Counted from the first letter of the stretch, positions 5,631 to 52,542 are shown. The stretch is DNA of 64,000 bases from Macrostomum lignano (GCA_002269645.1 NIVC01002334.1:1-64000), one strand, 5' to 3'. Notes: generated by a model from the letters alone, not told the origin. Translations and numbers: made by a program.

Positions 5631-5976
5631 CAGGGGCGTCGCCAATGGGGGGACAGGGGGGACATGTGTCCCCTACCCCCCCCCCCAGTAAAAGATCTGG
5701 GGGGCATGCCAATGCTTTCTCCCCCCCCCCACCATGTGACCCGTTATGGAAATCAATAAATTTGCGTCAGGCTGGCAAAAAAATAGTGCCTGCGGTGCTA
5801 AAATGAGTGCCTGCGGCGCTAAAATGAGTGCCTGCGGCGCTAAAATGAGTGCCTGCGGCGCTAAAATGAGTGCCTGCGGCGCTAAAATGAGTGCCTGCGG
5901 CGCTAAAATGAGTGCCTGCGGCGCCAAAATGAGTGTCTGGTGCCCCCCCACCAAAAAATCCATGGCGACACCCCTG
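5631..5976. mobile_element. hAT-type MITE carrying an internal 21-bp minisatellite
   Basis: TIRs CAGGGGCGTCGCCA / TGGCGACACCCCTG and a perfect 8-bp TSD ATCTCGCG (5623-5630 and 5977-5984). Internal (AAAATGAGTGCCTGCGGCGCT)n, ~7 copies. Confidence 0.88.
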
Positions 5977-24600: not shown

Positions 24601-27600
24601 ACCCATAATTAATTGTTTATGCTTACGTTCCAACCTAACTAGTCTTTGTAAAGGTAGTGATTTTTGAGGAGATGAAATGCCACGTTTAAAAAAATGAATA
24701 ACTAAACCAGGAAATTGGATCGCAATTAAATGATTTTTGAAACAAAACATTTTTATTATCAACTCGAACAATATTACCTTTATTATATCTTTTTTTATAA
24801 ACAGCAAAATGAGGCTTAACACTCTCAAAACAAATGCAGGTGGAAACTACGTAATGGCAATATTATTTTAATACGAGTATTATATAATACCCGTATATAG
24901 CAGCTGTTGCACTCCATTGCATATCATGAAAAAGTTGCTATTTGCTGGTTTTGGTTAGATTATCGCTGGCAGATTTCTGCTAGCAAGTCCTCGCTAGCAA
25001 GTCCTTGCTAGCAAATCCTCGCTAGCAAAATTCCTGCTAGCAAACTTCAGCTAGCAGATTTTGTCTAGCAGATTTCGGCTAGCACATTTTGGCTAGCAAA
25101 CTTTGGCTAGCAGATTTTGGCTAGCACATTTCAGCTAGCAAACTTTGGTTAGCAGATTTCGGCTAGCACATTTCGGCTAGCAAACTTCAGCTAGCAGATT
25201 TTGTCTAGCAGATTTCGGCTAGCACATTTTGGCTAGCAAACTTTGGCTAGCAGATTTTGGCTAGCACATTTCAGCTAGCAAACTTTGGTTAGCAGATTTC
25301 GGCTAGCACATTTCGGCTAGCAAACTTTGGCTAGCAGATTTCAGCAAGCAAATTTCTCGCTAGCAAACTTTGGCTAGCAGATTTCCTGCTAGCAAATTTC
25401 ATAGACCCATATGGTGTATTATAATGTTAGTATAGTGCTCTAGCATAGCATGGTTAGTATAAGGATCTTGCATATTCATGCCATACACTGCCATAAGGTC
25501 AAGTGTCTTCAATGATTGTACTTTTATTATTGCCATACTATCACTTATTGCCAATAAAAGTTAAAGTAGTGAGAATAAGACACCCAAATACCTCTGATGT
25601 TGCAGCTTTAGATATGGCTTTGACAAGACCACAAAATGATCATAATGGTTGCAAAGGTCTGTAATAGCCTATTTTGATATCTATTTGATACAATCAATTT
25701 GAATGAAAGTGCTAATGAAGTCATCAATTTAGCCCATAAGTGGATTCAGGATTTATATATTGATAACTTTTACTATTGCAAAGTTAATTATGCAACTCAA
25801 TTATATATTTGCTTTGCTTTTCTTGTGCCATATTAGGCTTTAACCATCGACAGAAACAAAGTGAAATTGCTTCATAAAAATCAATAAGGTGCAGCCATTG
25901 CCATTCACAATAAAAATTACATAGGTCCTTTTCTATATCAAGGTGATATAGATGTGCTCCAGATGCAAGTCAATGATTCTACAGCATTTCTACCATGACT
26001 CAGATAAAACTAGATAAAACTAGAAAGATTTAATACTTTCTAGACACTTCAAGGTTTAGTATAACTCTTTTACAAGAATATATCCTGTAAAAGAGATTGG
26101 CATACTCAAAAGTCACTCAAAAACCATTTATGAATTATGATCAATAGTACTGTATGAGCATAGTTGAGACAGCAGGGTCCATAGTTTACCATATAATGAG
26201 TAAGTTACATGAAATTAATTAGCTATGCTTACATATTCGGATATGGAAAATTTTCGGTTACAGTGAACATACGTGCGAAACAGTCGGCCGACCGATTTGG
26301 CGGCAAACCAAGGAAGTCGCAAAAATGCCCACCCGAAAAAATAACGTAGTAGTACTAAGTAGCTGACGAGGCATTTTGGCTTAATAAGACAGTTAAAGTT
26401 GCTCCAGCCGTTTACCCAAATTTGCTTTAGGGTTTTTTTACATCTAAGTCGCATTTTTGGCCAAAAACTACGTCGCATTTTTTTTAAAACTAAGTCGCAT
26501 GAATGACAGTGAAGATCGATGCAAAGAAAAGTTTGTTTATTGCATTAAAAATTTGTAGAATGGCGGCTACCCTGTTTGTTCAACCGTTGGATCTGGTGAA
26601 GAATCGAATGCAGCTCAGTGGTATGGGCGGCTCGCAGCGCCTCTATAACAGCTCTTTTCACGCTCTGACATCTATACTTCGAGCCGAGGGTATCACCGGG
26701 GTGTACTCCGGTCTGTCAGCTGGCCTGATGCGTCAGGCCACCTACACCACAACTAGACTTGGCGTCTATACTGCTCTATTCGATGCAGTTAGTGCTAGGA
26801 ATGATAATAAGCCACCATCCTTTGTTGTCAAGGCAACTATTGGGTTAACAGCCGGAGCAATTGGAGCTTTTGTTGGCACCCCGGCTGAGGTGGCTCTGAT
26901 CCGCATGACTGCCGATGGCAGACTGCCAGCTGATCAGAGACGCGGCTACAGCAGCGTGTTTAACGCTTTGGCTAGGATTGTACGCGAAGAAGGCTTAGTG
27001 ACCCTCTGGCGCGGCTGCGTGCCCACAGTTGCCAGGGCAATGGTGGTTAATGCTGCCCAGCTGGCCACCTATTCTCAGGCTAAGCAAACTATCATTAGCT
27101 CGGGTATTATTAGTGTGAGTTGCCTCTAGCCTGCTGTAGATTTGCGATGCTGGTTGTGACTTCCATTGTGACTTCCCCATTGTGACCCTCCCACTGTGAC
27201 TTCCATTGTGACTCTCTCAGTGTGACTCTCCCATTGTGACCCTCCCACTTTGATTCTCCCACTGTGACTCTCCCACAGTGGTTCTTCCATTGTGACTCTT
27301 TCACTGTGACCCCCCCCCCACTGTGACTACTCACATTGTGACCCTCCCACTGTGACTTCCATTGTGACTCTTTCACTGTGACTCCCCCACTGTGACTACT
27401 CACATTGTGACCCTCCCACTGTGACTTCCATTGTGACTCTCTCATTGTGACCCCCCCCCCACTGTGACTACTCACATTGTGACCCTCCCACTGTGACTTC
27501 CATTGTGACTCTCTCATTGTGACTCACATTGTGACTCTCCCACTGTGACTTCCCCATTGTGATTCCTCCATTGTGACTTCCCTTCTGTGACTGTCTCATT

Positions 27601-33100: not shown

Positions 33101-36100
33101 CATCCTTCAAGAGCAAGAGTTTAGTCTATGGTATAGAAAGCAGGGCTTCACCTCCACAACCCCAATCTGCGCCGTGAGTGCTCCATTTACTGAAACTTTA
33201 ATAATAGTTGGTAATAAATACCCGTACATTCCCCACTTTGTTTCAATGTTCTGTGGCCGCAAACGGTTGAGGACTCGTTTATTGTCCCACTCAAACTTAT
33301 ATCCACCGTTCATAGTTTTTGGCATGTCCGTTGATATGATGCATTATGACTAATAATGCTAACTTCCTGGCTACCTGACCCCTCCAGCTCCAATGGTATT
33401 ATCTGAACGATATAGGCTGAGAGTGCACAGGCAACTATGATGAGGGTGTTGTAACCCGGGGGAGCGCCACGGCTACGCCTCAAGGATAATCTGATTGACT
33501 GCTACATCCCGTCGGACATGCAGAGTGAGGCGAGCAGAGATGGAAGAAAGAGAAGCGAACAGGGAGGAGAGTGTGAGAGCCTGTTGAGACGGCGAGATTG
33601 TTGTGGAAAAAAACCTTGAAAAGGAGCAGCCGAGAGCTACGCTGAGCAAGCAAGGGGGGGGCTGCTGGGGGCGCAGGAAGATGGGAAACGTGATTATCGC
33701 CAGGGCATCCCAACAGAGAGCCCGGGGCCTCTCTTAAGCAGGAAGTCAAAGTCAGGCAGTGAGGAAAGACTTTCAAGCCTCTATGCTCTCAGTGTAAGAC
33801 TCGGGCATTGCGGTGCGTCCCCCCTATAGTAGGGGCAATGACGCTAAGAAAAGAAATGACGCACCAATTGAAGGGGATAACCTAGGAACAAAATTGCAAA
33901 TATGACACCTCTAAAGATATATCCGAGATATTAAGAGGCAACTATGACGCAATTAAAAAATCTTTCTACGCTACTGCAAGTAGAAATGATGATATATCCT
34001 TTCACATACCCAAATGAAAAAAGTTGAACAAAATTCCCTCCCAAAAAATATCTTCCACACAAAATATAGCAAAAAGCGAAAACTGGCTCAAAAAACTAAA
34101 AGCAAATTAATATGACTGAGTGTCATTCCTAAGCTCTCCATTTGATTCTATATATTGACAGCGCTAGTTAGAGATTCTGAGAGTAGTGGGCTCTGCGTCC
34201 TCTTTGCACCTGTGTATATCAGCCCCTTGAGTGTCATTTCTAAGCTCTCCATTTGATTCTATATATTGACAGTGCTAGTTAGAGATGCTGAGAGAAGCGG
34301 GCTCTGCGTCATCTTTGCACCTGTGTATATCAGCCCCATTGAGTGTCATTTCTAAGCTCTCCATTTGATTCTATATATTGACAGTGCAAGTTAGAGATGC
34401 TGAGAGAAGCGGGCTCTGCGTCATCTTTGCACCTGTGTATATCAGCCCCATTGAGTGTCATTTCTAAGCTCTCCATTTGATTCTATATATTGACAGCGCT
34501 AGTTAGAGATTCTGAGAGTAGCGGGCTCTGCGTCATCTTTGCACCTGTGTATATTAGCCCCATTGAGTGTCATTTCTAAGCTCTCCATTTGATTCTATAT
34601 ATTGACAGTGCTAGTTAGAGATGCTGAGAGAAGCGGGCTCTGCGTCATCTTTGCACCTGTGTATATCAGCCCTATTGAGTGTCATTTCTAAGCTCTTCAT
34701 TTGATTCTATATATTGACAGCGCTAGTTAGAGATTCTGAGAGAAGCGGGCTCTGCGTCATCTTTGCACCTGTGTATATCAGCCCCATTGAGTGTCATTTC
34801 TAAGCTCTCCATTTGATTCTATACATTGACAGCGCTAGTTAGAGATTCTGAGAGTAGCGGGCTCTGCGTCATCTTTGCACCTGTGTATATCAGCCCCATT
34901 GAGTGTCATTTCTAAGCTCTCCATTTAATTCTATATATTGACAGTGCAAGTTAGAGATGCTGAGAGAAGCGGGCTCTGCGTCATCTTTGCACCTGTGTAT
35001 ATCAGCCCCATTGAGTGTCATTTCTAAGCTCTCCATTTAATTCTATATATTGACAGCGCTAGTTAGAGATTCTGAGAGAAGCAGGCTCTGCGTCATCTTT
35101 GCACCTGTGTATATCAGCCCCATTGAGTGTCATTTCTAAGCTCTCCATTTGATTCTATATATTGACAGTGCAAGTTAGAGATGCTGAGAGAAGCGGGCTC
35201 TGCGTCATCTTTGCACCTGTGTATATCAGCCCCATTGAGTGTCATTTTTAAGCTCTCCATTTAATTCTATATATTGACAGCGCAAGTTAGAGATGCTGAG
35301 AGAAGCGGGCTCTGCGTCATCTTTGAACCTGTGTATATCAGCCCCATTGAGTGTCATTTTTAAGCTCTCCATTTAATTCTATATATTGACAGCGCTAGTT
35401 AGAGATGCTGAGAGAAGCGGACCACTCTGTTTGCGGCATTCGTTGTCGGGTAAAGTGCATTATGCATGTAATGTGTATTTTTGCATTTGCTGTCAGTATT
35501 TGACAAGCGTAATAATTTGCTAAGAATAGGAATTAGGAATGTTTTTAGGAGCGTAGAAACTGAAGAAAAAGGTATATTGAATCGCCCGTTTATATTGTTG
35601 TGTTTTAAGAAGCATTTAAATTTAGTGAAAGTTATTTTGTAAAATAGGTGTTTAATACATTAAAAAAATGATGAAGCCAAGGAAGCAATTTATTTCTTTG
35701 TTATGTTTTTCCCAAGTCGTAGTATAGTAGATGCATAAGCATTTATGAGGCATAAGCAAAGGCATAGGCATACGCATAGACATAAGCATACATGTATAAG
35801 CATTTATAAGGCATAAGCAAAGGCATAGGCATACGCATAGACATAAGCATACATGTATAAGCAGAAGCATAGATTAAATTTTTGATAACACAGTTTCCAG
35901 GCGGCAGTCACGTCCCAATTTGCTCACCTCTGCCATGCGTTGGTAAGCTTGGCAGAGCTGCTTTGAAGAGTTTTTCGGAGCCGCCTCTACTCCGCTGGCG
36001 AAGCGCCACTGGTGCAGCCACGCGCTAGTAGGTGGCTCGTCAAAAAATTGGACATGAATTTGTTTCGAGCAAAAGCCCTTGGTGCACTTTTTTCCGCGCC

Positions 36101-39100
36101 GGGGTAAGCAAACCATCGCAGGCCACCAGTTGTCTCCGTTTGTTGGCCAGTAGCCGAGAACCAGCGATCCCGGTTGAATTTTTTGACGCTTGACTGCACT
36201 ATTGGCCGGAGTTGGAGCTGCTGGTCGCTTTCTAGCCAGGCGATGGCCGGGGCCAGAGGCTGCGGCGTCGCCAACAGCGGCATCGGCAGTAGAGGCTGCG
36301 GCGTCGCCAGCAGCGGCATCGGAGGCTGCGGCGTCACCAGCAGCGGCATCGGCAGTGGAGGCTGCGGCGTCGCCAGCAGCGGCATCGGCAGCGGAGGCTG
36401 CGGCGTCGCCAGCAGCGGCATCGGCAGCGGAGGCTGCGGCGTCGCCAGCAGCGGCATCGGCAGTGGAGGCTGCGGCGTCGCCAGCAGCGGCATCGGCAGC
36501 GGAGGCTGCGGCGTCGCCAGCAGCGGCATCGGCAGCGGAGGCGGAGACAGCGGCGCCATCAAATTCGCTATCGCTGTTGCCGTACAGCTGGTTTACGATC
36601 CCATTGAAATCCTCCGAGTTAAACGATACGTCAAGCAGGACGGCGTCCGACAGGGCGGTGTCAAGCAGGACGGCGCCAGGCACGGTGTCGCTAGGCACAG
36701 CGGCGGCAGACACAGCGGCGCCAGGCGCGATGTCGCAAAACACAGCGGCGGCAGACACAGCGGCGCCAGGCACGGTGTCGCTAGGCACAGCGGCGGCAGA
36801 CACAGCGGCGCCAGGCGCGATGTCGTAAAACACAGCGGCGGCAGACACAGCGGCGCCAGGCACGGTGTCGCTAGGCACAGCGGCAGCAGACACAGCGGCG
36901 CCAGGCGCGATGTCGCAAAACACAGCGGCGGCAGACACAGCGGCGCCAGGCACGGTGTCGCTAGGCACAGCGGCGGCAGATACAGCGGCCCCAGCGGCAG
37001 GCAGGATGGGAGCAGTCGGCCGACGGGTCTTCTTTGCCGCCGATGTCGATGCCGCTGCTTTTTTTTGCCATCGGCACGGCGGAGGAGCCCTGGACCCATT
37101 CGCCGATGGGCCGGCAACCGACACGGAGTCCCTGTCAGCAGACGGCGGATTGTCCATCCTATGAAGAATGCTGTCCAGGTCGTAATCTAATAGAGGAAAG
37201 ATAGAAAGTAGCAAGTTTTTTAAGCAAATTCATTTAACGGGGAGAAAACAACTAGAACTGACTTTTTTATTGCTAATGTAAATATTTTAGGTCATTTCTG
37301 ACAAAATTAGTAAATTTCATTGCATTTATAGCGCCTTTTAATTGTACAGGTTATTCGCAAATTCTAATTTCCTCAAATGTTAGCAATCATGCTGTACTCA
37401 CTGTCGCTATCGATGCCGCCGGCGAGTTCGTTGGCCGCCCTCTGCAGCCGGCTGCCTTGAATTGGAGCTCTGGCGCTCAGGGTGTCGTCTTGCAGCGCTG
37501 TCGCACTCGACACCAATTTCTTTGTTAGTTCACGGCCCTTCTTCCGCCTCTCCTTGGTCTGGCCCTGTTTAGATTTTCAGACGGGATTGCAGATTTGATG
37601 GAGTCAGATGAGTAGAATGAATGAAAAATAATACAATATATACTCATAATTGTGTTTACTACATTCCTACATTGGTGTAAGGGCTCAAATGCGCAGCTTT
37701 AATGACTGAACTATGTTATATGCATCTATTTAGTGTATTGAATTTAGTTTTTATTCAGAACTTTTTATTAACTCACAAAAGGTGCAACTGCTTTATAAAT
37801 ATTAAAATAAGTTTGAATTAGTTGCTAAGGAATCCTATTTTACACTTAAAATATGATTTTTGTCGTTTCAGAAGTCTTCAGTGACAATTATTTAGCAAAT
37901 TTAGCGATTTTACCTGGTAAAATTGGCGCTGCACACCTTCGGTGTGATTTTGGTGGTCAGCCATGAGCCGCTGTTCCTCCGCAGAGCAGTTTGACAGGCC
38001 CATAACCTCCAACCATTGCCGAAACTTGGAAACCGTGACGTTTTTGAGCAGCGGAGAATACCTTTCTCGGTACTGGTAAAACAGTCGGTCAAATGACCCG
38101 TAGGGAAACACGAGCGCTAGGTCATCGTCCTTTGGACGCTCAGCAAAGCGCTGGGCCAGCAGCTGCATGAGCAGGTCGGCGCAGGGCGCGACGCTGGCCC
38201 AGGCCGACCCATGCTTTGCGTTCGACTTGTGGCTCTGCACCTTCAGCGGCTCGTTAGGTGCTTTGAGCCAGCGCCGGGCGTCCGAGATAAGGCAAGTCGA
38301 GGCCACGCCTTGCCGGTTGGCATTACCATCGCCAAAGCAGATGACCATGCCAACGGCCAGGAATGTCACCGTCCTGTGCGGATGGAATTAGAGGTATTTA
38401 TTTATTTATAGGTAATTTTCTAAGCTGTCTCAGATTTCTGTAATTTCTGAGCTAATAAAATTTTCAATGCCATTCTGAATACCAGTGCCATATTGAATAC
38501 CAGCTAGCGCCATATTTATCCCAGTGCCATTTTGAATTCCAGCGCCATATTGAATACCAGCTAGCGCCATATTTATCCCAGTGCCATTTTGAATTCCAGC
38601 GCCATATTGAATACCAGCTAGCGCCATATTTATCCCAGTGCTATTTTGAATACAGTGCCATATTTATCCCAGCGCCATTTTTAATGCCAGTGTCATATTA
38701 AGCCCCATCAAACTTTTATACCTCGGCATAAAAAGCATTGGGAAAAAATTTAACTCACCTGTCCTTGGTTGATCGCGCTTCTGCCAGCACAGCGTCTTTC
38801 ATCTCAAAGACGGCTTTAATCTGCTCGCCTGTGAGCAATTCTTCTTCTCGGCGGTCAATAAGCTTCGCATAATATTCGGCCTTCGGCCCCATTGAACTTG
38901 CAGTCCAATTTTTTGTGGACTGCCTGTACGAGGTCAGCTGTTGTTGCATCCCACCGTCTACAATCTGCTGGAAACGGCGGGTAATTAAAAAATTACCCAC
39001 TTTCTCAAGCGCGGACACCGTTTGTTTTAGAATGGAGTAGGACAAACTGTCCAGATATTCGCTAATTCTATCGCGCATATCTTCGCTGATCAGCTGATTA

Positions 39101-42100
39101 AAGCTCATGATATCTAGACGCTGCATCAGCCGTTTGAGGTAGCAGCGGATCTCGCGGACCGTAGCCGGCTTTTTTCGTCCGCCTAAAGAGCTTGCCAGGA
39201 AGACGCAGAGTGCTTCCACGTCAACTGTCGATGGGTGCTCAGCCACTGCTGCTCTGGCTGGCACTTTGGCCCTGGCTTCGATAAGTTTCTGCTCTTTCTC
39301 GGCTCGAACTACGCTAGGGTGGCTATTTCGCTTGTGGCTGCTGAGCTGATTTGCGTTGTTCTTCCATTCGCCGCAGACTGCACACTGCAGTGCCGTCTCG
39401 GGCATCGGGCCGGCAGTTCTTTCGTGAGTATGCAGCTTAACTGCAGCTCGCAGCGCTTGCAGAGCTTTTCTCTGCAGAGCATCTGCTGGGACCTGTTCAG
39501 TTGCTGCTAGCTTTTCTTTCGTGCTTTCTAGCACAGCTGAATGAGCCCTTTTGATGTGCTCACTAAATCTGGATTGTTTAATTGGCATGCAGTTGCCAAA
39601 CGGGCAGATATACTCTTGCCCGGCCCGCGTTTTCTTTGGCTCCTGGGCGTTGGCGGGCTGCTGGGTGCTGGCGGGCTGCTGGGTGCTGGCGGGCTGCTGG
39701 GTGCTGGCGGGCTGCTGGGTGCTGGCGGGCTGCTGAGTGCTGGCCGGCTGCTGGGTGCTGGCGGGCTGCTGGGTGCTGGCGGTCTTCTGGGTGCTGGCGG
39801 GCTGCTGAGTGCTGGCGGGCTGCTGGGTGCTGGCGGTCTTCTGGGTGCTGGCGGGCTGCTGAGTGCTGGCCGGCTGCTGGGTGCTGGCGGGCTGCTGGGT
39901 GCTGGCGGGCTGCTGAGTGCTGGCGGGCTGCTGGGTGCTGGCGGGCTGCTGGGTGCTGGCGGGCTGCTGAGTGCTGGCGGGCTGCTGGGTGCTGGCGGGC
40001 TGCTGGGTGCTGGCGGGCTGCTGGGTGCTGGCGGGCTGCTGAGTGCTGGCTGGCTGCTGGGTGCTGGCGGGCTGCTGGGTGCTGGCGGTCTTCTGGGTGC
40101 TGGCGGGCTGCTGAGTGCTGGCGGGCTGCTGGGTGCTGGCGGTCTTCTGGGTGCTGGCGGGCTGCTGAATGGACGACTTTGTCCATTTTTCCCATTGCAA
40201 CAGTTTTTCAATAAATGTCTTATTCATTGCGATTGAATTGAATTGAATAGCAATTGAAGGTATGATGCGAAATAGAAATTCGAGAATTAGATTATATATG
40301 CGAGAAAAAATATGCATATGCTCAAAAATGGGGATGAAGTCAGTCGTCAACAAATCAAAGGGAAGATGAAATTTCATTGGTTGCAATCTTGACTCAACTT
40401 TGGTGACTAATTAAAGTTTACCATTTTACATATTTGGAACTGCTTGACACGATTCTTTACAATAATGGCGCAATCATAAGTTTGGTGCAACAAATTTGCT
40501 TAGATAGGTGTCTTCCACCATGAACCACCTATCACTTTCACTGAGCATTGCGCAATCTTGAGCATACTCAGAGCACGTATTTGCTTTTGAACAATCGTGA
40601 AAACTGCGATTCTTATCTTTACTCAAACTCCAGCTATGGTGGAAAGATCGGGAAAAGCGCGAATCACACCACCAAACACACCGCTGTGCATAATACAAAA
40701 CAATATATAGATAAAAAGTGGAACTCTCACAGCGGGAGACCAAACCAAAAGTGAAAGCAAAGCTAAATTGTATTTTAGAAAGAGCCTTACTAAAGAAGCT
40801 GGTGAAATAATTCTGAGCTAAACTGTCAGTCATCAAGTATCAATAAAATGTACGAGCACCGTATATTCAAACGTCGATTTAAACTATGGCAGCACTGTCA
40901 ATATATAGAATTAAATGGAGAGCTTAGAAATGACACTCAATGGGGCTGATATACACAGGTGCAAAGATGACGCAGAGCCCGCTTCTCTCAGCATCTCTAA
41001 CTTGCACTGTCAATATATAGAATTAAATGGAGAGCTTAGAAATGACACTCAATGGGGCTGATATACACAGGTGCAAAGATGACGCGGAGCCTGCTTCTCT
41101 CAGCATCTCTAACTAGCGCTGTCAATATATAGAATTAAATGGAGAGCTTAGAAATGACACCCAATGGGGCTGATATACACAGGTGCAAAGATGACGCGGA
41201 GCCCGCTTCTCTCAGCATCTCTAACTTGCACTGTCAATATATAGAATTAAATGGAGAGCTTAGAAATGACACTCAATGGGGCTGATATACACAGGTGCAA
41301 AGATGACGCAGAGCCTGCTTCTCTCAGCATCTCTAACTAGCGCTGTCAATATATAGAATTAAATGGAGAGCTTAGAAATGACACCCAATGGGGCTGATAT
41401 ACACAGGTGCAAAGATGACGCAGAGCCCGCTTCTCTCAGAATCTCTAACTAGCGCTGTCAATATATAGAATTAAATGGAGAGCTTAGAAATGACACTCAA
41501 TGGGGCTGATATACACAGGTGCAAAGATGACGCAGAGCCCGCTTCTCTCAGCATCTCTAACTAGCGCTGTCAATATATAGAATTAAATGGAGAGCTTAGA
41601 AATGACACTCAATGGGGCTGATATACACAGGTGCAAAGATGACGCAGAGCCCGCTTCTCTCAGAATCTCTAACCAGCGCTGTCAATATATAGAATCAAAT
41701 GGAGAGCTTAGAAATGACACTCAATGGGGCTGATATACACAGGTGCAAAGATGACGCGGAGCCCGCTTCTCTCAGCATCTCTAACTAGCGCTGTCAATAT
41801 ATAGAATCAAATGGAGAGCTTAGAAATGACACTCAATGGGGCTGATATACACAGGTGCAAAGATGACGCAGAGCCCGCTTCTCTCAGAATCTCTAACTAG
41901 CGCTGTCAATATATAGAATCAAATGGAGAGCTTAGAAATGACACTCAATGGGGCTGATATACACAGGTGCAAAGATGACGCAGAGCCCGCTTCTCTCAGC
42001 ATCTCTAACTTGCACTGTCAATATATAGAATCAAATGGAGAGCTTAGAAATGACACTCAATGGGGCTGATATACACAGGTGCAAAGATGACGCAGAGCCC

Positions 42101-45100
42101 GCTTCTCTCAGCATCTCTAACTAGCACTGTCAATATATAGAATTAAATGGAGAGCTTAGAAATGACACTCAATGGGGCTGATATACACAGGTGCAAAGAT
42201 GACGCAGAGCCCGCTACTCTCAGAATCTCTAACTAGCACTGTCAATATATAGAATTAAATGGAGAGCTTAGAAATGACACTCAATGGGGCTGATATACAC
42301 AGGTGCAAAGATGACGCAGAGCCCACTTCTCTCAGCATCTCTAACTAGCACTGTCAATATATAGAATTAAATAGAGAGCTTAGAAATGACACTCAATGGG
42401 GCTGATATACACAGGTGCAAAGATGACGCAGAGCCCGCTTCTCTCAGCATCTCTAACTAGCACTGTCAATATATAGAATTAAATGGAGAGCTTAGAAATG
42501 ACACTCAATGGGGCTGATATACACAGGTGCAAAGATGACGCAGAGCCCGCTTCTCTCAGCATCTCTAACTAGCACTGTCAATATATAGAATTAAATGGAG
42601 AGCTTAGAAATGACACTAAATGGGGCTGATATACACAGGTGCAAAAATGACGCAGAGCCTGCTTCTCTCAGCATCTCTAACTTGCACTGTCAATATATAG
42701 AATTAAATGGAGAGCTTAGAAATGACACTCAATGGGGCTGATATACACAGGTGCAAAGATGACGCAGAGCCCGCTTCTCTCAGAATCTCTAACTAGCGCT
42801 GTCAATATATAGAATCAAATGGAGAGCTTAGAAATGACACTCAATGGGGCTGATATACACAGGTGCAAAGATGACGCAGAGCCCGCTTCTCTCAGAATCT
42901 CTAACTAGCACTGTCAATATATAGAATCAAATGGAGAGCTTAGAAATGACACTAAATGGGGCTGATATACACAGGTGCAAAGATGACGCAGAGCCTGCTT
43001 CTCTCAGCATCTCTAACTTGCACTGTCAATATATAGAATTAAATGGAGAGCTTAGAAATGACACTAAATGGGGCTGATATACACAGGTGCAAAGATGACG
43101 CAGAGCCTGCTTCTCTCAGCATCTCTAACTTGCACTGTCAATATATAGAATTAAATGGAGAGCTTAGAAATGACACCCAATGGGGCTGATATACACAGGT
43201 GCAAAGATGACGCAGAGCCCGCTTCTCTCAGAATCTCTAACTAGCGCTGTCAATATATAGAATTAAATGGAGAGCTTAGAAATGACACTCAATGGGGCTG
43301 ATATACACAGGTGCAAAGATGACGCAGAGCCCGCTTCTCTCAGAATCTCTAACTAGCACTGTCAATATATAGAATCAAATGGAGAGCTTAGAAATGACAC
43401 TCAATGGGGCTGATATACACAGGTGCAAAGATGACGCGGAGCCCGCTTCTCTCAGCATCTCTAACTAGCGCTGTCAATATATAGAATCAAATGGAGAGCT
43501 TAGAAATGACACTCAATGGGGCTGATATACACAGGTGCAAAGATGACGCAGAGCCCGCTTCTCTCAGAATCTCTAACTAGCGCTGTCAATATATAGAATC
43601 AAATGGAGAGCTTAGAAATGACACTCAATGGGGCTGATATAAACAGGTGCAAAGATGACGCAGAGCCCGCTTCTCTCAGCATCTCTAACTTGCACTGTGA
43701 ATATATAGAATTAAATGGAGAGCTTAGAAATGACACTCAATGGGGCTGATATACACAGGTGCAAAGATGACGCAGAGCCCGCTTCTCTCAGCATCTCTAA
43801 CTAGCACTGTCAATATATAGAATTAAATGGAGAGCTTAGAAATGACACTCAATGGGGCTGATATACACAGGTGCAAAGATGACGCAGAGCCTGCTTCTCT
43901 CAGCATCTCTAACTAGCGCTGTCAATATATAGAATTAAATGGAGAGCTTAGAAATGACACCCAATGGGGCTGATATACACAGGTGCAAAGATGACGCAGA
44001 GCCCGCTTCTCTCAGAATCTCTAACTAGCGCTGTCAATATATAGAATTAAATGGAGAGCTTAGAAATGACACTCAATGGGGCTGATATACACAGGTGCAA
44101 AGATGACGCAGAGCCCGCTTCTCTCAGCATCTCTAACTAGCGCTGTCAATATATAGAATTAAATGGAGAGCTTAGAAATGACACTCAATGGGGCTGATAT
44201 ACACAGGTGCAAAGATGACGCAGAGCCCGCTTCTCTCAGAATCTCTAACCAGCGCTGTCAATATATAGAATCAAATGGAGAGCTTAGAAATGACACTCAA
44301 TGGGGCTGATATACACAGGTGCAAAGATGACGCAGAGCCCGCTTCTCTCAGCATCTCTAACTAGCGCTGTCAATATATAGAATCAAATGGAGAGCTTAGA
44401 AATGACACTCAATGGGGCTGATATACACAGGTGCAAAGATGACGCAGAGCCCGCTTCTCTCAGAATCTCTAACTAGCGCTGTCAATATATAGAATCAAAT
44501 GGAGAGCTTAGAAATGACACTCAATGGGGCTGATATACACAGGTGCAAAGATGACGCAGAGCCCGCTTCTCTCAGCATCTCTAACTTGCACTGTCAATAT
44601 ATAGAATCAAATGGAGAGCTTAGAAATGACACTCAATGGGGCTGATATACACAGGTGCAAAGATGACGCAGAGCCCGCTTCTCTCAGCATCTCTAACTAG
44701 CACTGTCAATATATAGAATTAAATGGAGAGCTTAGAAATGACACTCAATGGGGCTGATATACACAGGTGCAAAGATGACGCAGAGCCCGCTACTCTCAGC
44801 ATCTCTAACTAGCGCTGTCAATATATAGAATTAAATGGAGAGCTTAGAAATGACACTCAATGGGGCTGATATACACAGGTGCAAAGATGACGCAGAGCCC
44901 ACTTCTCTCAGCATCTCTAACTAGCACTGTCAATACATAGACTTAAATGGAGAGCTTAGAAATGACACTCAATGGGGCTGATATACACAGGTGCAAAGAT
45001 GACGCAGAGCCCGCTTCTCTCAGCATCTCTAACTAGCACTGTCAATATATAGAATTAAATGGAGAGCTTAGAAATGACACTCAATGGGGCTGATATACAC

Positions 45101-48100
45101 AGGTGCAAAGATGACGCAGAGCCCGCTTCTCTCAGCATCTCTAACTAGCACTGTCAATATATAGAATTAAATGGAGAGCTTAGAAATGACACTCAATGGG
45201 GCTGATATACACAGGTGCAAAGATGACGCAGAGCCCGCTTCTCTCAGCATCTCTAACTTGCACTGTCAATATATAGAATTAAATGGAGAGCTTAGAAATG
45301 ACACTCAATGGGGCTGATATACACAGGTGCAAAGATGACGCAGAGCCTGCTTCTCTCAGCATCTCTAACTAGCACTGTCAATATATAGAATTAAATGGAG
45401 AGCTTAGAAATGACACTCAATGGGGCCGATATACACAGGTGCAAAGATGACGCAGAGCCCGCTTCTCTCAGAATCTTTAACTAGCACTGTCAATATATAG
45501 ACTTAAATGGAGAGCTTAGAAATGACACTCAATGGGGCTGATATACACAGGTGCAAAGATGACGCAGAGCCCGCTTCTCTCAGCATCTCTAACTAGCACT
45601 GTCAATATATAGAATTAAATGGAGAGCTTAGAAATGACACTCAATGGGGCTGATATACACAGGTGCAAAGATGACGCAGAGCCCGCTTCTCTCAGCATCT
45701 CTAACTAGCACTGTCAATATATAGAATTAAATGGAGAGCTTAGAAATGACACTCAATGGGGCTGATATACACAGGTGCAAAGATGACACAGAGCCCGCTT
45801 CTCTCAGCATCTCTAACTTGCACTGTCAATATATAGAATTAAATGGAGAGCTTAGAAATGACACTCAATGGGGCTGATATACACAGGTGCAAAGATGACG
45901 CAGAGCCTGCTTCTCTCAGCATCTCTAACTTGCACTGTCAATATATAGAATTAAATGGAGAGCTTAGAAATGACACTCAATGGGGCCGATATACACAGGT
46001 GCAAAGATGACGCAGAGCCCGCTTCTCTCAGAATCTTTAACTAGCGCTGTCAATATATAGAATTAAATGGAGAGCTTAGAAATGACACCCAATGGGGCTG
46101 ATATACACAGGTGCAAAGATGACGCAGAGCCCGCTTCTCTCAGAATCTCTAACTAGCGCTGTCAATATATAGAATTAAATGGAGAGCTTAGAAATGACAC
46201 CCAATGGGGCTGATATACACAGGTGCAAATATTTTTATTTACATAGTTATTTGAATAACTATAACTTCAAATAGTTATTCGAAGGATTGTAGTTTTGTCT
46301 CTTGAAGTCAAATATGTCTTTGTTTTTCGCCTTAAAGTAGTATATCTGATTTCAGCTTAATTTTTGTTGGGATAGGGAAAATCTTGCGTTGTTTTATTGA
46401 TTTAAGTTTCGTCATTTTTTTGGGGTATATTTAGAATATATCCTCTTTTGGAACGTTAATTTTTTGCGCGTCATTTTTATTTTTTTATAGGATATATTCG
46501 ATTGTGTCATTTCTACATTTTGCGTCATCCAAACGCCCCTTTCCGACAATCTCCCGTGGAGCCCCCCCCCAGGGCAAATACGGAGCAAAATAGAGCATAA
46601 AAATGGCTTGACGCTTAAGTGGCCGGAACGCAGAGCTGAGGACGCGAGGCGAGATCGAATGTTGCTTCTCACCCAGTGAATGGAGCAAATTATATCCGTG
46701 AGATTATAAAAAAATTTCCCCCACGTTCCAGCTGAAATCCTTCCACGCTTGGGGTTTAATACAAGCCGAAATCTCTATCCTGCTCTCTCTCTTCTTCCCT
46801 TCGTCGCAACCGAATCCCATCTGGAGCCGGAAACTTCAAAGGGAAGCCGATCAAATATCCCCTATTGCTTTCGCAAGAGACGCTTGCGCCCTGCCGACAA
46901 TAGTCTAGCTGTGCAGTTTTATCCAGTTTACTTTGCACTGCAGAAACTCCCTCTCTAAATGAGACGAAATTAATTAGACTTGTTATTTGGATGTCTTTGA
47001 TATCAGATAGGTAGACAGATAGGAAATGAAGACAAGAAACTGCCACACGATATGGTGACTGTTAGTTGTGTTGCGTGGTTAGTGTCTCTTGAGTTTGACA
47101 AAAACAATTTTAAAGCTTTAATTAAAGAGAGGCCACCCGAAATGTGTCACAAATTTAGCCGTAACTTTTGAGGTAAGTGTCCAAAAGAGTTAAGATGTAG
47201 TCGTGTAGGAGCGAATAAGAGATGAAAATGTGCTGCTTTATACTTGGATTGGAATCAATGATACAGCATTGGCTTTTACGGTATGGGCCCAAGGACTACT
47301 CAAGTAACATATAACGGGTGTCCCAAAAAAAGGTAACACTTTGTGCGCTCACTGTGAGTGAGCAGTTAGGCCTATAGCACAGTAATTTAACAGGTCCACA
47401 GTAAACATTTGTAAGTTTTTCCCACAAACATTTGGTTGCGAAAAATTGCTCCAGAGGCGAGTTATTGAGCACAGAAGTGTACGCTAGCTTTTCTGCCAAG
47501 CTTTGCCATACACAGCTGCCATAGCCAATCTTTTGCTTTAAAAAATCTTAAGGAGCATAGACTCTGAGACGGTGTGTGGTCAAGTACCAGTTTATTTGAA
47601 AAATCGTTATTGATTTTTTGAGCTTGTAAGTGTACGCTAGCTTCTCTGATAAGCTTTGCCATAGACGGAGGCCATAGACAATCTTTTGCGTTAGAAAAAT
47701 GACAGAGACTCTGATACTGATCTAACGTTAAAATTTTTAAAAGTGAGCGCACAAAGTGTTACCTTTTTTTGGGACACCCGTTATATAGGACGCTACACTC
47801 GAAATCTATGGTATATGTTTTGCAGGCAACTTTTACCATAGATTTCGAGTGTTGCGTCCTTCTACTTAAGTTGCCCTTGTAATGGGCCCCAGAGTCACTA
47901 GCTACTAGCTACTTTCTGGACACTACTCATAGGTAGACAGATAGCCAGAGGACACTAAAACAGATTGGCACAGACAGACGGGCTACAGATGTCACAACTA
48001 CTAGCATGATCAGGTATACCGATAGACAGGCAGGCAAACGCACACAATAAAGTCTCTCACCTAGCGCTCCAGATAGCAGGATGGTTGCCCACACAGCGTC

Positions 48101-51100
48101 ATTAGCGAATCCCAGTGCCACAAAGAAGATCGCCTTCAAGCCGAAGCCTAAGCCAGCCAAAAGTTTCCTGATGGTGGTCCACTGTAGGCTGGTTCGCAGT
48201 TTCAAAAAGTCAGCCAGGCATCCGCCTGAAGAAATAATATAACGAATATTGAATTTAGAAACAAAATGAATCAAAGAACTCAGCATAGTTATTTGGTTGA
48301 TGCTCTGCTGGAATGGTACAATACATCTTGAAAAAACTTCTATTGGAATAAAAAAGTCAAACAGTCCGCCTGCTTGTAAGTGAAGAGACACTTCTGTTTG
48401 CTATATTTGTGCGGCTGCATTGGGAAGCTCGAGAAACAACTTCGCCCCAAGCCGCGCGTCATTGCAAAATTCATTAATTATTTATCTGCAGCTTGCATAG
48501 CTTCTTCTCCATCGTTTCTTCATCCGCTGAATAGAAGGCCTAGTTCCCGACAATATCCTTGTGTTTATACTGTGTGGTTATCGTACCAGATGTTTGTTGG
48601 AAGGGAAATGCAGAGAGGAGCATTAGTTGAACCAGCCTTCAACATCAAGTTGAACTGTAAGATTTCAATACTAGCTATAGTTGTTCGTGTAGATATTCAA
48701 TGGTTTTTTAGTCTTTTATAAACATAATAATAATAATTGATTACACCTGCCCTTAATAGGCAGATGTGAAAACGACAGCTCAGCCGCAGCTTTTGCGCGG
48801 CGCATCTGAAGACTGCGGACGGCTGTTCAGTCCAAGGACTGGGGGGTCGCCACACACCCTCAATTACATCAGAGAATGCTGGCACCCATTTTACTGCTGG
48901 GTGAACTGAAGCAATGCAGAGTTAAGTGTCTTGCTCAAGGACACAAATTGTTTCGAGTAGGTCGAGAATGGAACTTCTTACCTTTCAGTGATGAGTCCAA
49001 CGCTCTAACCACTAGGCTGCAACCCTTCTTTATCAAGGCACATGTTTTAAGTTAGCATGAGTTATTATTAGTAACGAAACTTTAACAAGAAACATCTGAC
49101 GTGTTTAATTAAGTCGAATTGCTACACTGATCGAGCTGCAAACTAGCCAAGCAAACACTCGTATAAGACCGATTGATGAAATAAAACTAAAGAGAAAATT
49201 TCTGTTCAATGTTAGTTGTTAATTTTAGTTTCAAGTTAGACAATAATGCTTTTTGTCCTGTCCTCCCACTGTGACTGTTTGTTCAGGATGCTCGCTGTTT
49301 AAACAAAAATCACACAAACCTTGTCTTGCTAAAATCCATGCCATTAACAAATTGAATGCATTCAGCACTCAATTGGTTTATCTCCAAGTTTAAAAGCCCA
49401 CTTACTGTTCAAACTACGTCGTATGACTGAAAACTAAAAATACAATAAGTACAGTGTAGTTTAAGTTATTGTCAATGTATGAGAAGGCAATAAAGTCTGA
49501 TTTTACGGTAAAACTACCATTCGGGGAATCCCACCCAGACAATTTTTTTGTTGCACCGGAACGGAGCAACGCAGGCACACGAACTTCCAGAACGCCGGCT
49601 AACTGTTTGTTGCACACCTTCTCAAACAAGAATCAAGTCACCAGCCCTGCGGACCGTCGAGATATTCGACGATTCTGCCAGAAGGTCGGAAGTTTCACTT
49701 TAGCGCTAGTGTATTTAGTTCACCCCAATCAGCATTGCGCAGCCTCGCCAAGCCTCCAAATTTCATCAGCACGTCGACCGCCTGTGTCTGCATCAGCTCT
49801 GACTCCGTTGGTCATTGGCATTCACCCAGTCAAAGCTTCTGGACCTTCAGCAGGTGACACCAGGTGACCATGGACACACTGTTGCAATCAAGCCTTGACA
49901 GTATACAAATTTCAACTGCTGGACATCCTCAGCTGGTCATCCAAAAAAAATTGTCAGGGGAAGTTCGACAGACGGAAAAATGGCTTATTATTCCTACTGT
50001 TAATCCCCTATATGCCGCAATGCCTATTGACATAAGGGTTTACTGAGTTTTCATGGATCGCATCAAAAGTACTCTCGAGACGCGGGTTGGTGGGTGTGGC
50101 ACGACAGGTACGAGAACTGAGAGTTAGCTGCGTTACTCAATAAATAAAGTCACTATTTGCATGTTCACCAACTTTTTGAGTCTACTTCGACAGTATAGAA
50201 ATGTCCACAGCAGCTGGAGCTGCATGAGTGGCAGCGGAACTTTGCAGCCATAAAAACCATCATTATCACTTTTGCTGCCATCGCTTCACTGAGAACTTCC
50301 CTGGATAAACTAGATCCGCCTCTCCCTCCCTCTCTCTCTGCCCACTTCAGACTCGTATATCATTGGGAGAATCTAGTGCAAACCGTATGCTCTGGTGAGC
50401 ACTGTACCTGTTTTAAGGCAGTTTATTGGCCTAGAATAACGTCACTTAAAATGGCAAGCCTAATATATCATATTTAAATATGCGAGAACTGAGAAAGATT
50501 TATCCGAATTTTATGCATAGATTAGCATTATTAATATCCTGATCTTATTTACAAGCGTAATTTGATTAATTGCTTGGTAAATCCCCGTCCTGCCAAGCCG
50601 ACAGTTACCGGTTTGGAGTTTTGCGTATCCGTGGCAGAAAGGTTTGCACAAAATAAATTGGCTGGCGAAAGGTTGTAAGCTGAAAAAGTGACTGATTAGC
50701 TAGTTAGTAGCACGGACAGAGTCTTACCGATTGGCACAAACAGTGACCTGGCCAGGAACGGAAACGATAGCAGGAATATGGTGTGACCAACGTCGGTTTT
50801 GTACATCTGGTGATAGTAGCTCTGCATGCACACCGAGCTGATCTGGAAGGTCCAGTCGTCTGCTGCGTACGTGAAAAATATCGCATAGACCTGTCTAGAT
50901 TTGAAAATCTCCTTCCACGGTACTCGAAGACGCCTGTGCGCGTACAGGACCTTCTTGGTGACCGTCACCTCCAAGTACTGGCGCTCCTGTTTGCCCAGGT
51001 TCTTGTCCTTCAAGGGCTTCTCGTCGATCAGTCGCCACCAGAAGATGCACCAGATCAAGCCGATGTTGGCGTAGATGTAGAACACCACCGCCCAGCCCCA

Positions 51101-51802
51101 GTGGTTCTCGATCTCCTGGCACACCGGCAGGCCGATCAGCGGACCGAGCGACACCCCGATGACGGCGAAGCAGAGCAGCGAGGATCGCTCACCTTCGGGT
51201 CCCCAGAAGCGCATCACACCAAAGACGGCCGGTATGAGGCAGCCTTCAGCCAGGCCCTGCATCAGTCGCAGCACTACAATAATCGCTATGGACGCTGAGA
51301 TATCTGCCGCGATTTGCGTAACCAAGGGCAGGAACAGGTTGAGACCGCAGGTGAGCGCCACGGAGCAGCCGAGTAGCAGGGAGCTGTCGTGATGCACCGT
51401 CAGGTAGCCGCCAACAGGGCTAGCCACCAGGTAGCCGATGAACACCGAGTTCTCAATCAGATCGTTGGCGGTGTTCTGCCAAGGCATCTGTCGGTGAGCG
51501 TTGGGCTGAAAGATTGAGGCGCTGCTGCTCGACCTAGCAACTGTGGCCGAGACGTTGGACTGCTTGTTCAAATAGTCCATGATGGCGACCATCTCCGCTC
51601 GCATGCCAATAACCACCGTCAGTCCGATGCAGCACAGCAGAGCTATCAGGTATCGTTTCCGACCGGGGCCGCAGCAGCAGAAGACGGGCCTCGATGCCGC
51701 AGCGCTGGCTGATGGCGTGTCAGCATGACCTGTGTGAGGGCAGTTCCTAGTTCTGCTAGTGCCGCTGCCGCTGTTGCTGTTGCTCTCCGCGCTCCACATC
51801 AT
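30133..51802 (-). CDS. SLC17-family (VGLUT/EAT-4-like) MFS transporter, 4 exons, ~547 aa
   Basis: Exons 51802-50728, 48225-48061, 31450-31343 and 30428-30133 (1644 nt, phase-1 junctions all match). Motifs [73 protein letters not shown]. Additional upstream exons cannot be excluded. Confidence 0.9.
30565..30830. repeat. Degenerate ~21-bp tandem repeat (GGTTTGTGTCTTTGGACAAC-like)
   Basis: Repeated TGTGTCTTT/GGACAA units in SLC17 intron 3. Confidence 0.75.
31655..32290. repeat. Degenerate ~21-bp tandem repeat (AACTTCAAGACAATAACAAC)
   Basis: About 30 TTCAAGACA-core units. Confidence 0.88.
34118..35420 (+). repeat. 112-bp satellite array, left arm, ~11.6 copies
   Basis: Unit GAGTGTCATTTCTAAGCTCTCCATTTGATTCTATATATTGACAGCGCTAGTTAGAGATTCTGAGAGAAGCGGGCTCTGCGTCATCTTTGCACCTGTGTATATCAGCCCCATT; period measured 34341 to 34453. 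Confidence 0.97.
35874..40227 (-). CDS. C2H2 zinc finger - tyrosine recombinase - PWWP fusion protein, 4 exons, ~1134 aa
   Basis: Exons 40227-38759, 38373-37914, 37564-37402 and 37186-35874 (3405 nt; phases 2, 0, 1 all match; GT-AG; no internal stops). ZnFs CPFGNC..HIKRAH and CAVC-x12-HKRNSH. YR motifs NANRQGV, HKS..KHG, SKFR, DHQNHT, QFY. PWWP-like [25 protein letters not shown]. The start ATG at 40227 is a best guess; the frame stays open to 40386. Confidence 0.85.
38465..38700. repeat. ~57-bp compound tandem repeat in intron 1 of the YR-PWWP gene
   Basis: Repeated CCAGTGCCATTTTGAATTCCAGCGCCATATTGAATACCAGCTAGCGCCATATTTATC. Confidence 0.85.
40892..46229 (-). repeat. 112-bp satellite array, right arm, ~48 copies, reverse complement of the left arm
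   Basis: Unit TGTCAATATATAGAATTAAATGGAGAGCTTAGAAATGACACTCAATGGGGCTGATATACACAGGTGCAAAGATGACGCAGAGCCCGCTTCTCTCAGCATCTCTAACTAGCGC; only a few variable positions. Confidence 0.98.
47290..47879. mobile_element. Small palindromic TIR element (CAAGGRCWACTTAAGT termini) hosting the Tc1 MITE
   Basis: CAAGGACTACTCAAGTA / TACTTAAGTTGCCCTTG ends and an internal ~26-bp hairpin (47788-47859). A relative lies at 52808-52946. Confidence 0.55.
47312..47783. mobile_element. Tc1/mariner-type MITE
   Basis: ~42-bp near-perfect TIR (TAACGGGTGTCCCAAAAAAAGGTAACACTTTGTGCGCTCACT) with TA duplicated on both sides. Confidence 0.88.
48724..49025 (-). mobile_element. tRNA-derived CORE-type SINE, full length
   Basis: Reverse complement of the 58232 copy, with a (TTA)n tail at 48724-48737. 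Confidence 0.85.
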
Positions 51803-52542
51803 TCGATTGTCCGACCTGTCTGTCTCTGATAGTCCATGCAGACTCACGATGGATCTACAGAATTGAGTAGGGAAGCATAATGATTTTAAGAACGCTGTAT
51901 CGTAGACAGAAGAAAAGCACCTTAAAGGGGAAGCGATGCTTCCATCCGACGGCTGCTCCAACCTCACACTTTCCTGCCCGAAAGTTTGAGGATTTGACTG
52001 AGTTAAGCTCAGCCAATAGTGAGAGCCTAGGCTTTAGTCTCTTGCGCAGCAGACTTCACCTAGGCCTTGTGGACACTGGATTGCTGTCGCCCCCAACCTC
52101 CTCTCTCGCAGCCTTTCTCCTTGCTTCTAGCAAAGACACACACAAACACGCGCTCACACACACGCACAAGCTCGCATGCAAACTCGCCGTCTGGTCGCTT
52201 ATCGAAGCAGAGAGTCACCAGAACTGGCGTTGCCACCCAGCGGAGCGTGACAATGAGCTTCCGCTGGGGCTCTCCTCCTCTCCCAGTGCCACCTAGGCTC
52301 TGCGTCCGCTCCCCTCTCCCCTTCGCTGTCTCCCTCTCTCTCTGCCTCTCGTTCCTCCGCCAACATAAATTACGCTTGTACAAATGCGACGCAAACGAGG
52401 GGCAAAGCTTGAGTAGTACTCGTATTAGTAGTATGTGTCCCCATAGCGTCCTGGTTTTCAAGGATAAATTTCGTGTTCCGATGCAGTCTTAATTTACGTA
52501 AAGCGATTTTCAATGAATTCGTGTTGTATATACCAGCAGCTC

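Follow-up and report, generated by a model that had tools for sequence, protein, structure and literature searches.

Inverted satellite arrays around a PWWP-fused tyrosine recombinase gene in Macrostomum lignano: probably internal parts of a Crypton-class DNA transposon

In a 64,000-nt stretch of Macrostomum lignano DNA (GCA_002269645.1 NIVC01002334.1:1-64000; hereafter, the window), a predicted tyrosine recombinase (YR) gene lies between two inverted arrays of a 112-bp satellite. This layout raises the question of what the arrays are. The original prediction, made from the sequence, offered two answers: a new type of element that combines YR chemistry with satellite arms, or a mobile cassette acting as a source of satellite DNA. 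Our analysis favours the second. Positions 33821–46539 probably form one Crypton-class DNA transposon that encodes a YR only, in which the inverted arrangement of the arrays is secondary and the arrays are not functional terminal inverted repeats (TIRs).

The arrays were delimited with Tandem Repeats Finder and their pairing with an inverted-repeat search. The short array (34117–35420, + strand) holds 11.7 copies with 96% matches and the long array (40891–46229, − strand) holds 47.7 copies with 97% matches; their consensus units are reverse complements, and the inverted arms extend over approximately 1198 nt with 96–98% complementarity. The copy numbers, orientation, spacing and coordinates originally given for the two arrays are right. 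The interval between them (35421–40890, 5470 bp) contains one minus-strand gene, and no other Pfam domain was found in any interior or flanking open reading frame (ORF) of the element, in agreement with the claim that nothing but a 5.5-kb YR–PWWP cassette lies there, no other ORF being detectable with Pfam. No long-range repeats beyond the arrays were found after array masking, and an Rfam search of 31–49 kb returned no RNA family.

How the arrays are to be read depends on where the element ends. A left terminal CCCC (33821–33824, + strand), presumed to be the crossover or target core, is directly repeated at the right terminus (46536–46539, + strand). The block starts CCCC-TATAGTAGGGGCAATGACGC (from 33821) and finishes TGCGTCATCCAAACG-CCCC (up to 46539), so that the bounds first claimed, 33831–46540, fall within approximately 10 bp of the termini reported here. 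The window element reads CCCC-TATAGTAGGGGCAATGAC at one end and GTCATCCAAACG-CCCC at the other, with terminal strings CCCCTATAGTAGGGGCAATGACGC and TGCGTCATCCAAACGCCCC; in outline, the ends are CCCC-TATAG..GGGGC..ATGAC and GTCAT..GCCCC-CCCC. Within the 64 kb, the string CCCCTATAG has a single occurrence, which coincides with the left boundary. No target-site duplication (TSD) is present at the window element, as had been noted, and CCCC stands at both termini instead.

Matching termini are found on related M. lignano elements. Three related families were compared: M. lignano family 1 (loci L001 and L003), M. lignano family 2 (L002 and L004) and a barnacle family (L005–L007), which is described by its right terminus only, the left ends being cut by contig ends. 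Two short metagenomic contigs with the closest homologues (L008 and L009) gave no informative ends or arrays. The family 1 gene (PAA84835/PAA66829), which for PAA66829 is a single exon, lies in a 9.4–10.5-kb unit at two loci with unrelated flanks, L001 7203–16586 corresponding to L003 7187–17691 at 99% identity. In family 2, L002 8481–16903 corresponds to L004 7692–15640, again with unrelated flanks, and the three barnacle copies are 99% identical in unrelated flanks. Family 1 ends read CCCC-TATAGGCACGTTTATGAC and GTCATAAACGTG-CCCC, the M. lignano copies finishing in ..GTGCCCC, and no TSD was found in this family either. Both the window element and the two M. lignano copies, which lie in different flanking sequences, begin with CCCC-TATAG, and an alignment of the four ends of the window element and family 1 (A6) reveals a common GGGGC/GGCAC..ATGAC core. 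The family 1 ends bear 14-bp inverted arms and, joined across one CCCC, give GTCATAAACGTGCC-CCTATA-GGCACGTTTATGAC, a site resembling loxP and FRT in type, with a 14-6-14 palindrome that is perfect. Because the window termini match multicopy M. lignano termini and lie outside the arrays, the whole 12.7 kb can be read as one element in which the arrays are internal.

Arrays also travel with these relatives. Family 1 carries an 80-bp and a 190-bp array within its transposed unit, both on one side of the gene, and their copy numbers differ between the two loci (12.1 versus 16.1 copies of the 80-bp unit and 5.2 versus 8.8 copies of the 190-bp unit). The motif AATGAC is enriched at the family 1 ends and in both of its arrays, in reverse orientation in the 80-bp array and forward in the 190-bp array, with two to three per unit; beyond this motif, the units are unrelated to the 112-bp unit. 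A like design with other motifs is found in M. lignano family 2 (TTACAGG) and in the barnacle family (AAGCGCA). Since the family 1 arrays move with the element and both units contain the motif, motif-bearing satellite arrays are a family trait, and the proposal of a mobile cassette carrying or seeding satellite DNA holds: family 1 copies at two loci share the 80-bp and 190-bp arrays. None of the three related families has inverted arrays. The alternative proposal, with satellite arms read as TIRs, is thereby weakened, as it is by termini that lie approximately 300 bp outside the arrays. As a separate observation, the barnacle element has a 340-bp self-complementary segment directly 3′ of the recombinase gene (L005 9763–10102, L006 8551–8890 and L007 8490–8829), followed by a 96-bp tandem repeat of 2.8 copies.

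The terminal regions of the window element share a motif rather than an alignment. The left terminal region (33825–34116, + strand) contains TATAGTA, the core arm GGGGC and four forward copies of ATGAC[GA]C (hereafter ATGACRC) at 33838, 33856, 33902 and 33944, with none in reverse; the right terminal region (46230–46535, + strand) contains three reverse copies (upper coordinates 46474, 46510 and 46528), none forward, and the arm GCGTCAT-CCAAAC-GCCCC. Outside the element, 11 sites on both strands are spread over approximately 51 kb, a density at which approximately 0.1 would be expected per 420 bp. Each satellite unit carries two copies, in reverse orientation in the left array and forward on the + strand in the right array. 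The two terminal regions themselves, approximately 300 bp each, give a best local alignment that is not significant against shuffled sequences (z = 2.1), and their reading as diverged TIRs was rejected on this result. The inverted similarity originally described in the ~300 bp outside the arrays hence survives as oriented motif clusters plus a core arm, and not as an alignment. Nor does the 112-bp unit have significant similarity to either outer region beyond the motif.

The distance from core arm to first motif is 1 nt on the left and 6 nt on the right of the window element (GGGGC-A-ATGACGC versus GCGTCAT-CCAAAC-GCCCC; 33830–33845 versus 46521–46539). Family 2 has the same 1-nt versus 6-nt spacing (CTGTAA-T-GGAAAAG versus CTTTCC-AAATCG-TTACAG; L002 8481–8510 versus 16880–16903), and decay of the left end was rejected as an explanation because of this equal asymmetry. 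In M. lignano family 1, the spacing is symmetric (4 and 4).

The identity of the enzyme was approached by homology, alignment and structure prediction. Twelve relatives of the recombinase (best E = 4.8e-30) emerged when 1.84 billion representatives were scanned exhaustively with HMMER, including the M. lignano hypothetical proteins PAA84835, PAA66829, PAA91811 and PAA87763 as well as XP_043206974 of the barnacle Amphibalanus amphitrite and others. Across eight family members (alignments A4 and A5), the residues R, HK, R, H and Y do not vary and follow one another as in a YR; five of the six YR catalytic residues are present, the histidine of the HxxR box being replaced (S/T-x-Y/F-R). An AlphaFold2 model of the exon-2 domain (predicted local distance difference test (pLDDT) score 82.9, predicted TM-score (pTM) 0.77) was compared with the PDB using Foldseek, and the top six matches were all YR or YR-like, among them XerA, an archaeal Xer, the Tn1549 integrase and YopR. 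The XerA match has a probability of 0.99, E = 0.025 and TMq 0.57, with type IB topoisomerases ranked lower; a 496-aa multi-domain model was uninformative in the fold search (lambda Int third, probability 0.33). Profile–profile alignment to known YRs with hhalign places the catalytic boxes in register (P = 4.5e-5). On this sequence and model evidence, we accept the exon-2 domain as a predicted tyrosine recombinase, with the caveat of the replaced HxxR histidine.

The relationship of this recombinase to described groups was examined by running the family profile with hmmsearch against 20 representative YR domains (Additional file 4 of PMC3212892). The set comprised CryptonA, I, F and S, DIRS and bacterial YRs; the CryptonV group, named as a Repbase group in PMC5753468 and PMC4455052, was outside it. 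No match in this 20-sequence database had E < 0.019, and the best was Tn916. In the same hmmsearch, a second YR of the window (20487–20960) served as positive control and matched CryptonA at E = 3e-14. Two word-indexed homology searches, with the spliced core and with the family alignment, gave no match, and exact matches were likewise lacking for six ORF variants of the window and for the M. lignano VGLUT (vesicular glutamate transporter) protein. The recombinase belongs to a YR lineage that is not recognized by current domain libraries.

The gene as predicted has four exons. Three long minus-strand ORFs and one short exon join through canonical GT–AG introns into a 1134-aa product. Exon 1 (40227–38759) contains the start codon, an 18-bp in-frame repeat of 29 copies (QQPAST), two C2H2-type fingers that are kept in homologues (alignment A3) and a helical N-terminal domain modelled with high pLDDT. 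Intron 1 (38374–38758, − strand), with GT and AG boundaries, contains a 57-bp tandem repeat of 3.5 copies. Exon 2 (38373–37914) encodes the catalytic domain (NANR .. HK .. FRQW .. H .. QFY), and predicted exon 3 (37564–37402), with AG/GT boundaries and an open frame, encodes a basic linker after the catalytic tyrosine. Predicted exon 4 (37186–35874) encodes Ala-rich in-frame repeats, a C-terminal PWWP domain (approximately 36003–36143) and the stop codon. The join of the YR exons to the last two exons, including the PWWP exon, is likewise a splice prediction. The PWWP domain matches Pfam PF00855 at E = 7.3e-6 and 26.8 bits, passing the gathering threshold of 25.6, and its sequence matches in the PDB are the PWWP domains of MSH6, NSD2 and NSD3 (best E = 6.6e-6); Pfam found no PWWP in the scanned homologues. 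Catalytic residues, fold match and PF00855 together bear out the claim that the cassette encodes a tyrosine recombinase and a PWWP domain. On either side of the gene lie a 3′ region (35421–35873, − strand) with a 61-bp repeat of 2.2 copies at 35731–35863 and a 5′ region, presumed to be the promoter (40228–40890, − strand), with a 120-aa ORF that has no Pfam domain.

In-frame tandem repeats are present in the long exons of the window gene (36256–36994 and 39638–40167, with units of 18, 36 and 45/90 bp) and in its M. lignano homologues (units of 24, 57 and 75 bp; L001 10248–10574 and 12635–13210; L002 10448–13602 and 15289–15641). In L002, a 451-bp repeat of seven copies spans exon and intron. 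A tendency to duplicate internally in tandem seems to characterize the family, the genomes, or both.

From these features, we propose a mechanism in which the recombinase would release the element in circular form through recombination between the two 4-bp CCCC copies. Excision would create a lox-like site, GCGTCAT..GCCCC-TATAGTA-GGGGC.ATGACGC, with the predicted circle junction TTGCGTCATCCAAACG-CCCC-TATAGTAGGGGCAATGACGC, and would leave the predicted empty site GCGGTGCGTCC-CCCC-TTTCCGACAA; the circle would then insert again into a target that contains CCCC, making no TSD. Candidate binders of ATGACRC are the zinc fingers, as the obvious choice, or the N-terminal domain, and the motifs would be accessory binding sites of the recombinase. 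The PWWP domain may anchor the enzyme to gene bodies marked by H3K36 methylation, in keeping with the intronic site. The 112-bp satellite itself may be an amplified internal segment with two accessory motifs.

The inverted split of the satellite could then have arisen either by an inversion with one breakpoint in a former single array, or by a flip through recombination between the arms. Unit positions 1 (A/T), 4 (A/G), 22 (T/C) and 102 (C/A) are polymorphic and segregate in both arms, which implies that the arms were once one array or that they exchange sequence. The gene points towards the TATAG end in the window element and away from it in M. lignano family 1. When both are read in the same direction, the left array breaks off at unit phase 73, whereas the outer edge of the right array picks up at phase 87, leaving a 13-nt gap; the outer edges of the two arrays are approximately 26 nt out of phase. 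An inversion of 35.4–46.2 kb with one breakpoint in a single array of approximately 59 units would explain the polymorphisms, the gene flip and the phase gap, and would restore the family gene orientation; flipping between already inverted arms would explain the polymorphisms and the gene flip only. Given the shared polymorphisms, the flipped gene and the lack of inverted arrays in relatives, the foldback appearance is probably, and with moderate confidence, a rearrangement inside one element and not a long TIR.

Two further observations concern the array edges. The sequence just inside the left array was considered as a continuation of the unit with a 7-nt deletion, and this was rejected because the match was no better than with shuffled sequences. 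An AT-rich 8-2-8 palindrome, TAGTTATT-TG-AATAACTA, lies at 46244–46261, separated by 15 bp from the outward-facing end of the long array, and may act as a fragile or template-switch site for one of the inversion breakpoints proposed here.

Other explanations of the layout were weighed against this reading. Were the arrays genuine and functional long TIRs, the locus would represent a foldback-type YR transposon that requires its arms for synapsis or mobilization. The arms are indeed inverted, unequal as in Drosophila FB or Tetris (PMC4079207) and 96–98% alike, every unit contains the terminus-marking motif twice with array polarity opposite to the neighbouring end, and the shared polymorphisms could reflect concerted evolution of working arms. 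However, the arrays stop short of the termini, the ~300-bp terminal regions cannot be aligned, the outer edges are out of phase, the three related families (two in M. lignano, one in the barnacle) move without inverted arrays, and M. lignano family 1 has two different arrays on one side of the gene; we consider functional TIRs unlikely. A nested insertion, in which a small YR–PWWP Crypton entered an older non-autonomous foldback or satellite element, would suit a window that is extremely rich in tandem repeats and that also holds a gene-less foldback (14-bp arrays at 23626–23826 and 24959–25400). Yet the M. lignano-type YR termini lie outside the arrays and not between arrays and gene, the arrays are built on ATGACRC, which is also the motif of the termini, and the inner array edges have no terminus-like strings or short direct repeats, making such nesting very unlikely.

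Long satellite arrays are prone to assembly error, and a mis-join or a foldback chimera of long reads within one array could produce an inverted pair. Here the arms are unequal (1.3 versus 5.3 kb) and form an imperfect palindrome whose best arm–arm match is 98%, the spacer is 5.5 kb of unique sequence with an intact spliced gene, and each arm adjoins its own unique region, which corresponds to the left or the right terminus expected for the family; an artefact is therefore highly improbable. Much the same low standing applies to the idea that the gene encodes a domesticated host chromatin protein, as ZMYM and KCTD1 were derived from Cryptons, and not an active transposase, with the repeats incidental. 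Fusion to a PWWP chromatin reader and zinc fingers, the presence of introns and the well-documented domestication of Cryptons (PMC3212892) speak for it. The catalytic residues are nevertheless kept, unlike in most domesticated DUF3504 proteins (PMC3212892, PMC13465315), the gene sits in the intron of another gene between transposon-type termini, relatives are multicopy at 99% identity, and the absence of PWWP from scanned homologues indicates that this is not a conserved host architecture; we regard domestication as highly improbable too.

Several points weigh against our preferred reading of a single Crypton-class transposon. Its recombinase has a substituted histidine in the HxxR box, its Foldseek E-value is only 0.025, no YR family appeared in Pfam scans of the window protein or of 13 family members, and no YR appeared in PDB sequence or profile searches. 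The link between YR and PWWP exons is predicted GT–AG splicing only. The homology of its termini to those of M. lignano consists of short strings (9 nt and approximately 10 nt), one copy of the window element was examined, with movement seen for relatives only, and the protein is a putative binder of the motif. As to the origin of the layout, phase continuity across the 13-nt gap is weak (probability by chance of approximately 0.1–0.2), and the shared polymorphisms could arise equally from gene conversion between functional arms.

A more far-reaching interpretation, which we think quite unlikely, is that the element represents an undescribed, superfamily-level metazoan YR lineage in flatworms, barnacles and metagenomic eukaryotes, defined by lox-like ends and accessory-motif arrays. 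The inverted arrays would then make the cassette invertible or amplifiable, by analogy with Flp and the 2-micron plasmid, with systematic seeding of satellites in macrostomid genomes and PWWP-directed steering into transcribed gene bodies.

The host gene of the element was identified from an ORF at 50696–51967 that is 78% identical to an M. lignano MFS protein, its other matches being flatworm vesicular glutamate transporters. With tblastn (queries P0017 and P0020), VGLUT exons were placed on the minus strand at 51739–50714, 48340–48059, 31451–31341 and 30429–30235. The second and third of these, upstream and downstream of the element, bound a 16.6-kb intron that contains it, in line with the original claim of an intronic location, and the recombinase gene is on the host-gene strand. 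The same intron holds, outside the element, a perfect 45-bp inverted repeat (47309–47353 and 47742–47786) followed by a 74-bp palindrome (47787–47860), which together may be a miniature inverted-repeat transposable element.

Elsewhere in the window, a second, unrelated YR gene lies at 20487–21639 (− strand) in an AT-rich block at 18–26 kb with a GC content of 30–39%. It consists of adjacent ORFs (20932–21639 and 20487–20960); since these overlap, either a frameshift or a short intron is indicated. Its C-terminal part matches CryptonA domains (CryA2_SP, E = 3e-14; KCTD1, 1e-12). The gene-less foldback mentioned above is built of inverted arrays of the 14-bp unit TGCTAGCCAAAATC around a 1.2-kb spacer, with arms of up to 120 nt at 91% complementarity, so inverted tandem-repeat arms without a recombinase do occur in this genome. 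A 21-bp unit, AAAATGAGTGCCTGCGGCGCY, forms two + strand arrays 57 kb apart (5780–5939, 7.7 copies; 62592–63193, 28.7 copies) and could represent a minisatellite that has dispersed or belong to some other family of repeats. The remaining features are a remnant of a non-LTR (long terminal repeat) retrotransposon at 7878–9610 (+ strand) with Exo_endo_phos_2 and RVT_1 ORFs in several frames, and, from further host genes, an exon of an amiloride-sensitive sodium channel (ASC) at 4298–5164 (− strand), an ORF at 3206–4105 on the same strand without a Pfam match and a Mito_carr (mitochondrial carrier) exon at 26503–27129 (+ strand).

To our knowledge, no class of eukaryotic DNA transposons is less well understood than the Cryptons, whose ends are hard to define and whose recombination sites are not known. 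The sharply defined family ends described here join to a lox-like palindrome and provide a testable substrate for a metazoan YR transposase, and the joined site of the family is a possible new tool for site-specific recombination. Kilobase satellite arrays of a putative binding motif inside a YR transposon add a further class to the DDE, Helitron and foldback elements as seeders of satellites. The fusion to a PWWP domain suggests that chromatin directs where this DNA transposon inserts, much as LEDGF guides the integration of retroviruses. Were the element transcribed as part of the host pre-mRNA, its inverted arrays would fold into an RNA hairpin of approximately 1.3 kb, which might enter small-RNA silencing or interfere with how a neuronal transporter gene is spliced.

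Set beside known systems, the window element, with its lox-like ends, motif clusters, PWWP fusion and arrays, is best placed among the Crypton-class YR DNA transposons as a new lineage or variant, rather than in a hybrid class of YR and Foldback elements. In the Crypton model, short terminal direct repeats are the recombination substrates, the intermediate is circular and the target is a short similar sequence (PMC3212892); active Cryptons behaving as in the circle model have been observed (PMC9977147). The window element likewise encodes a YR alone, with no reverse transcriptase, has introns and lacks a TSD, and its CCCC termini can be compared with the 4–6-bp terminal repeats of Cryptons (PMC3212892) and with the CACCG/CAYCG end and target of CryptonF-1_cRei (PMC9977147); a circular intermediate followed by site-specific integration would be a further likeness. 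It differs in having a family profile with no detectable similarity to the catalytic domains of CryptonA, I, F and S, in its N-terminal C2H2 fingers and C-terminal PWWP domain, and in its inverted core arms, subterminal motif clusters and kilobase arrays, whereas Cryptons were described as lacking TIRs (PMC3212892).

With foldback elements (FB, and Tetris of D. virilis; PMC4079207), the window element shares inverted, unequal tandem-repeat arms, a unique terminal domain outside them, as in Tetris, and repeats borne by the element that can seed satellite DNA (PMC4079207). Tetris, however, is non-autonomous and linked to DDE-type cut-and-paste transposition with TSDs, whereas the window element has a YR, no TSD and terminal regions that are not inverted copies; its arrays are internal and do not form the ends, and its relatives lack the inverted arrangement. 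FB elements, too, are linked to a DDE-type cut-and-paste mechanism with TSDs.

Among site-specific recombination systems, loxP and FRT have a 13-8-13 organization, and the joined ends of family 1 resemble them in that a short spacer, itself asymmetric, is flanked by inverted arms (14-6-14). The 2-micron plasmid carries its YR gene between long inverted repeats, and recombination flips the intervening segment. The window YR gene similarly lies between long inverted repeats, but the element is chromosomal and metazoan, its repeats are satellite arrays without a complete core site, and inversion or amplification is a proposal. DIRS-like elements (DIRS1, Ngaro and PAT) are also eukaryotic YR mobile elements, and DIRS1 has inverted terminal repeats and a presumed circle; the window element, in contrast, has no reverse transcriptase or RNase H, no internal complementary region and no split direct repeats, and its YR is unrelated in sequence. 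Subterminal repeat clusters are found in hAT, CACTA and P elements, which use DDE transposases, while lambda Int and Xer/cer rely on arm-type or accessory sites with host factors or an extra Int domain. Oriented short motifs near each end, apart from the crossover site, are common to all of these and to the window element, in which the motif has, as a difference, also been amplified into kilobase arrays. This likeness suggests that the window clusters may provide accessory binding that aids the pairing of the ends.

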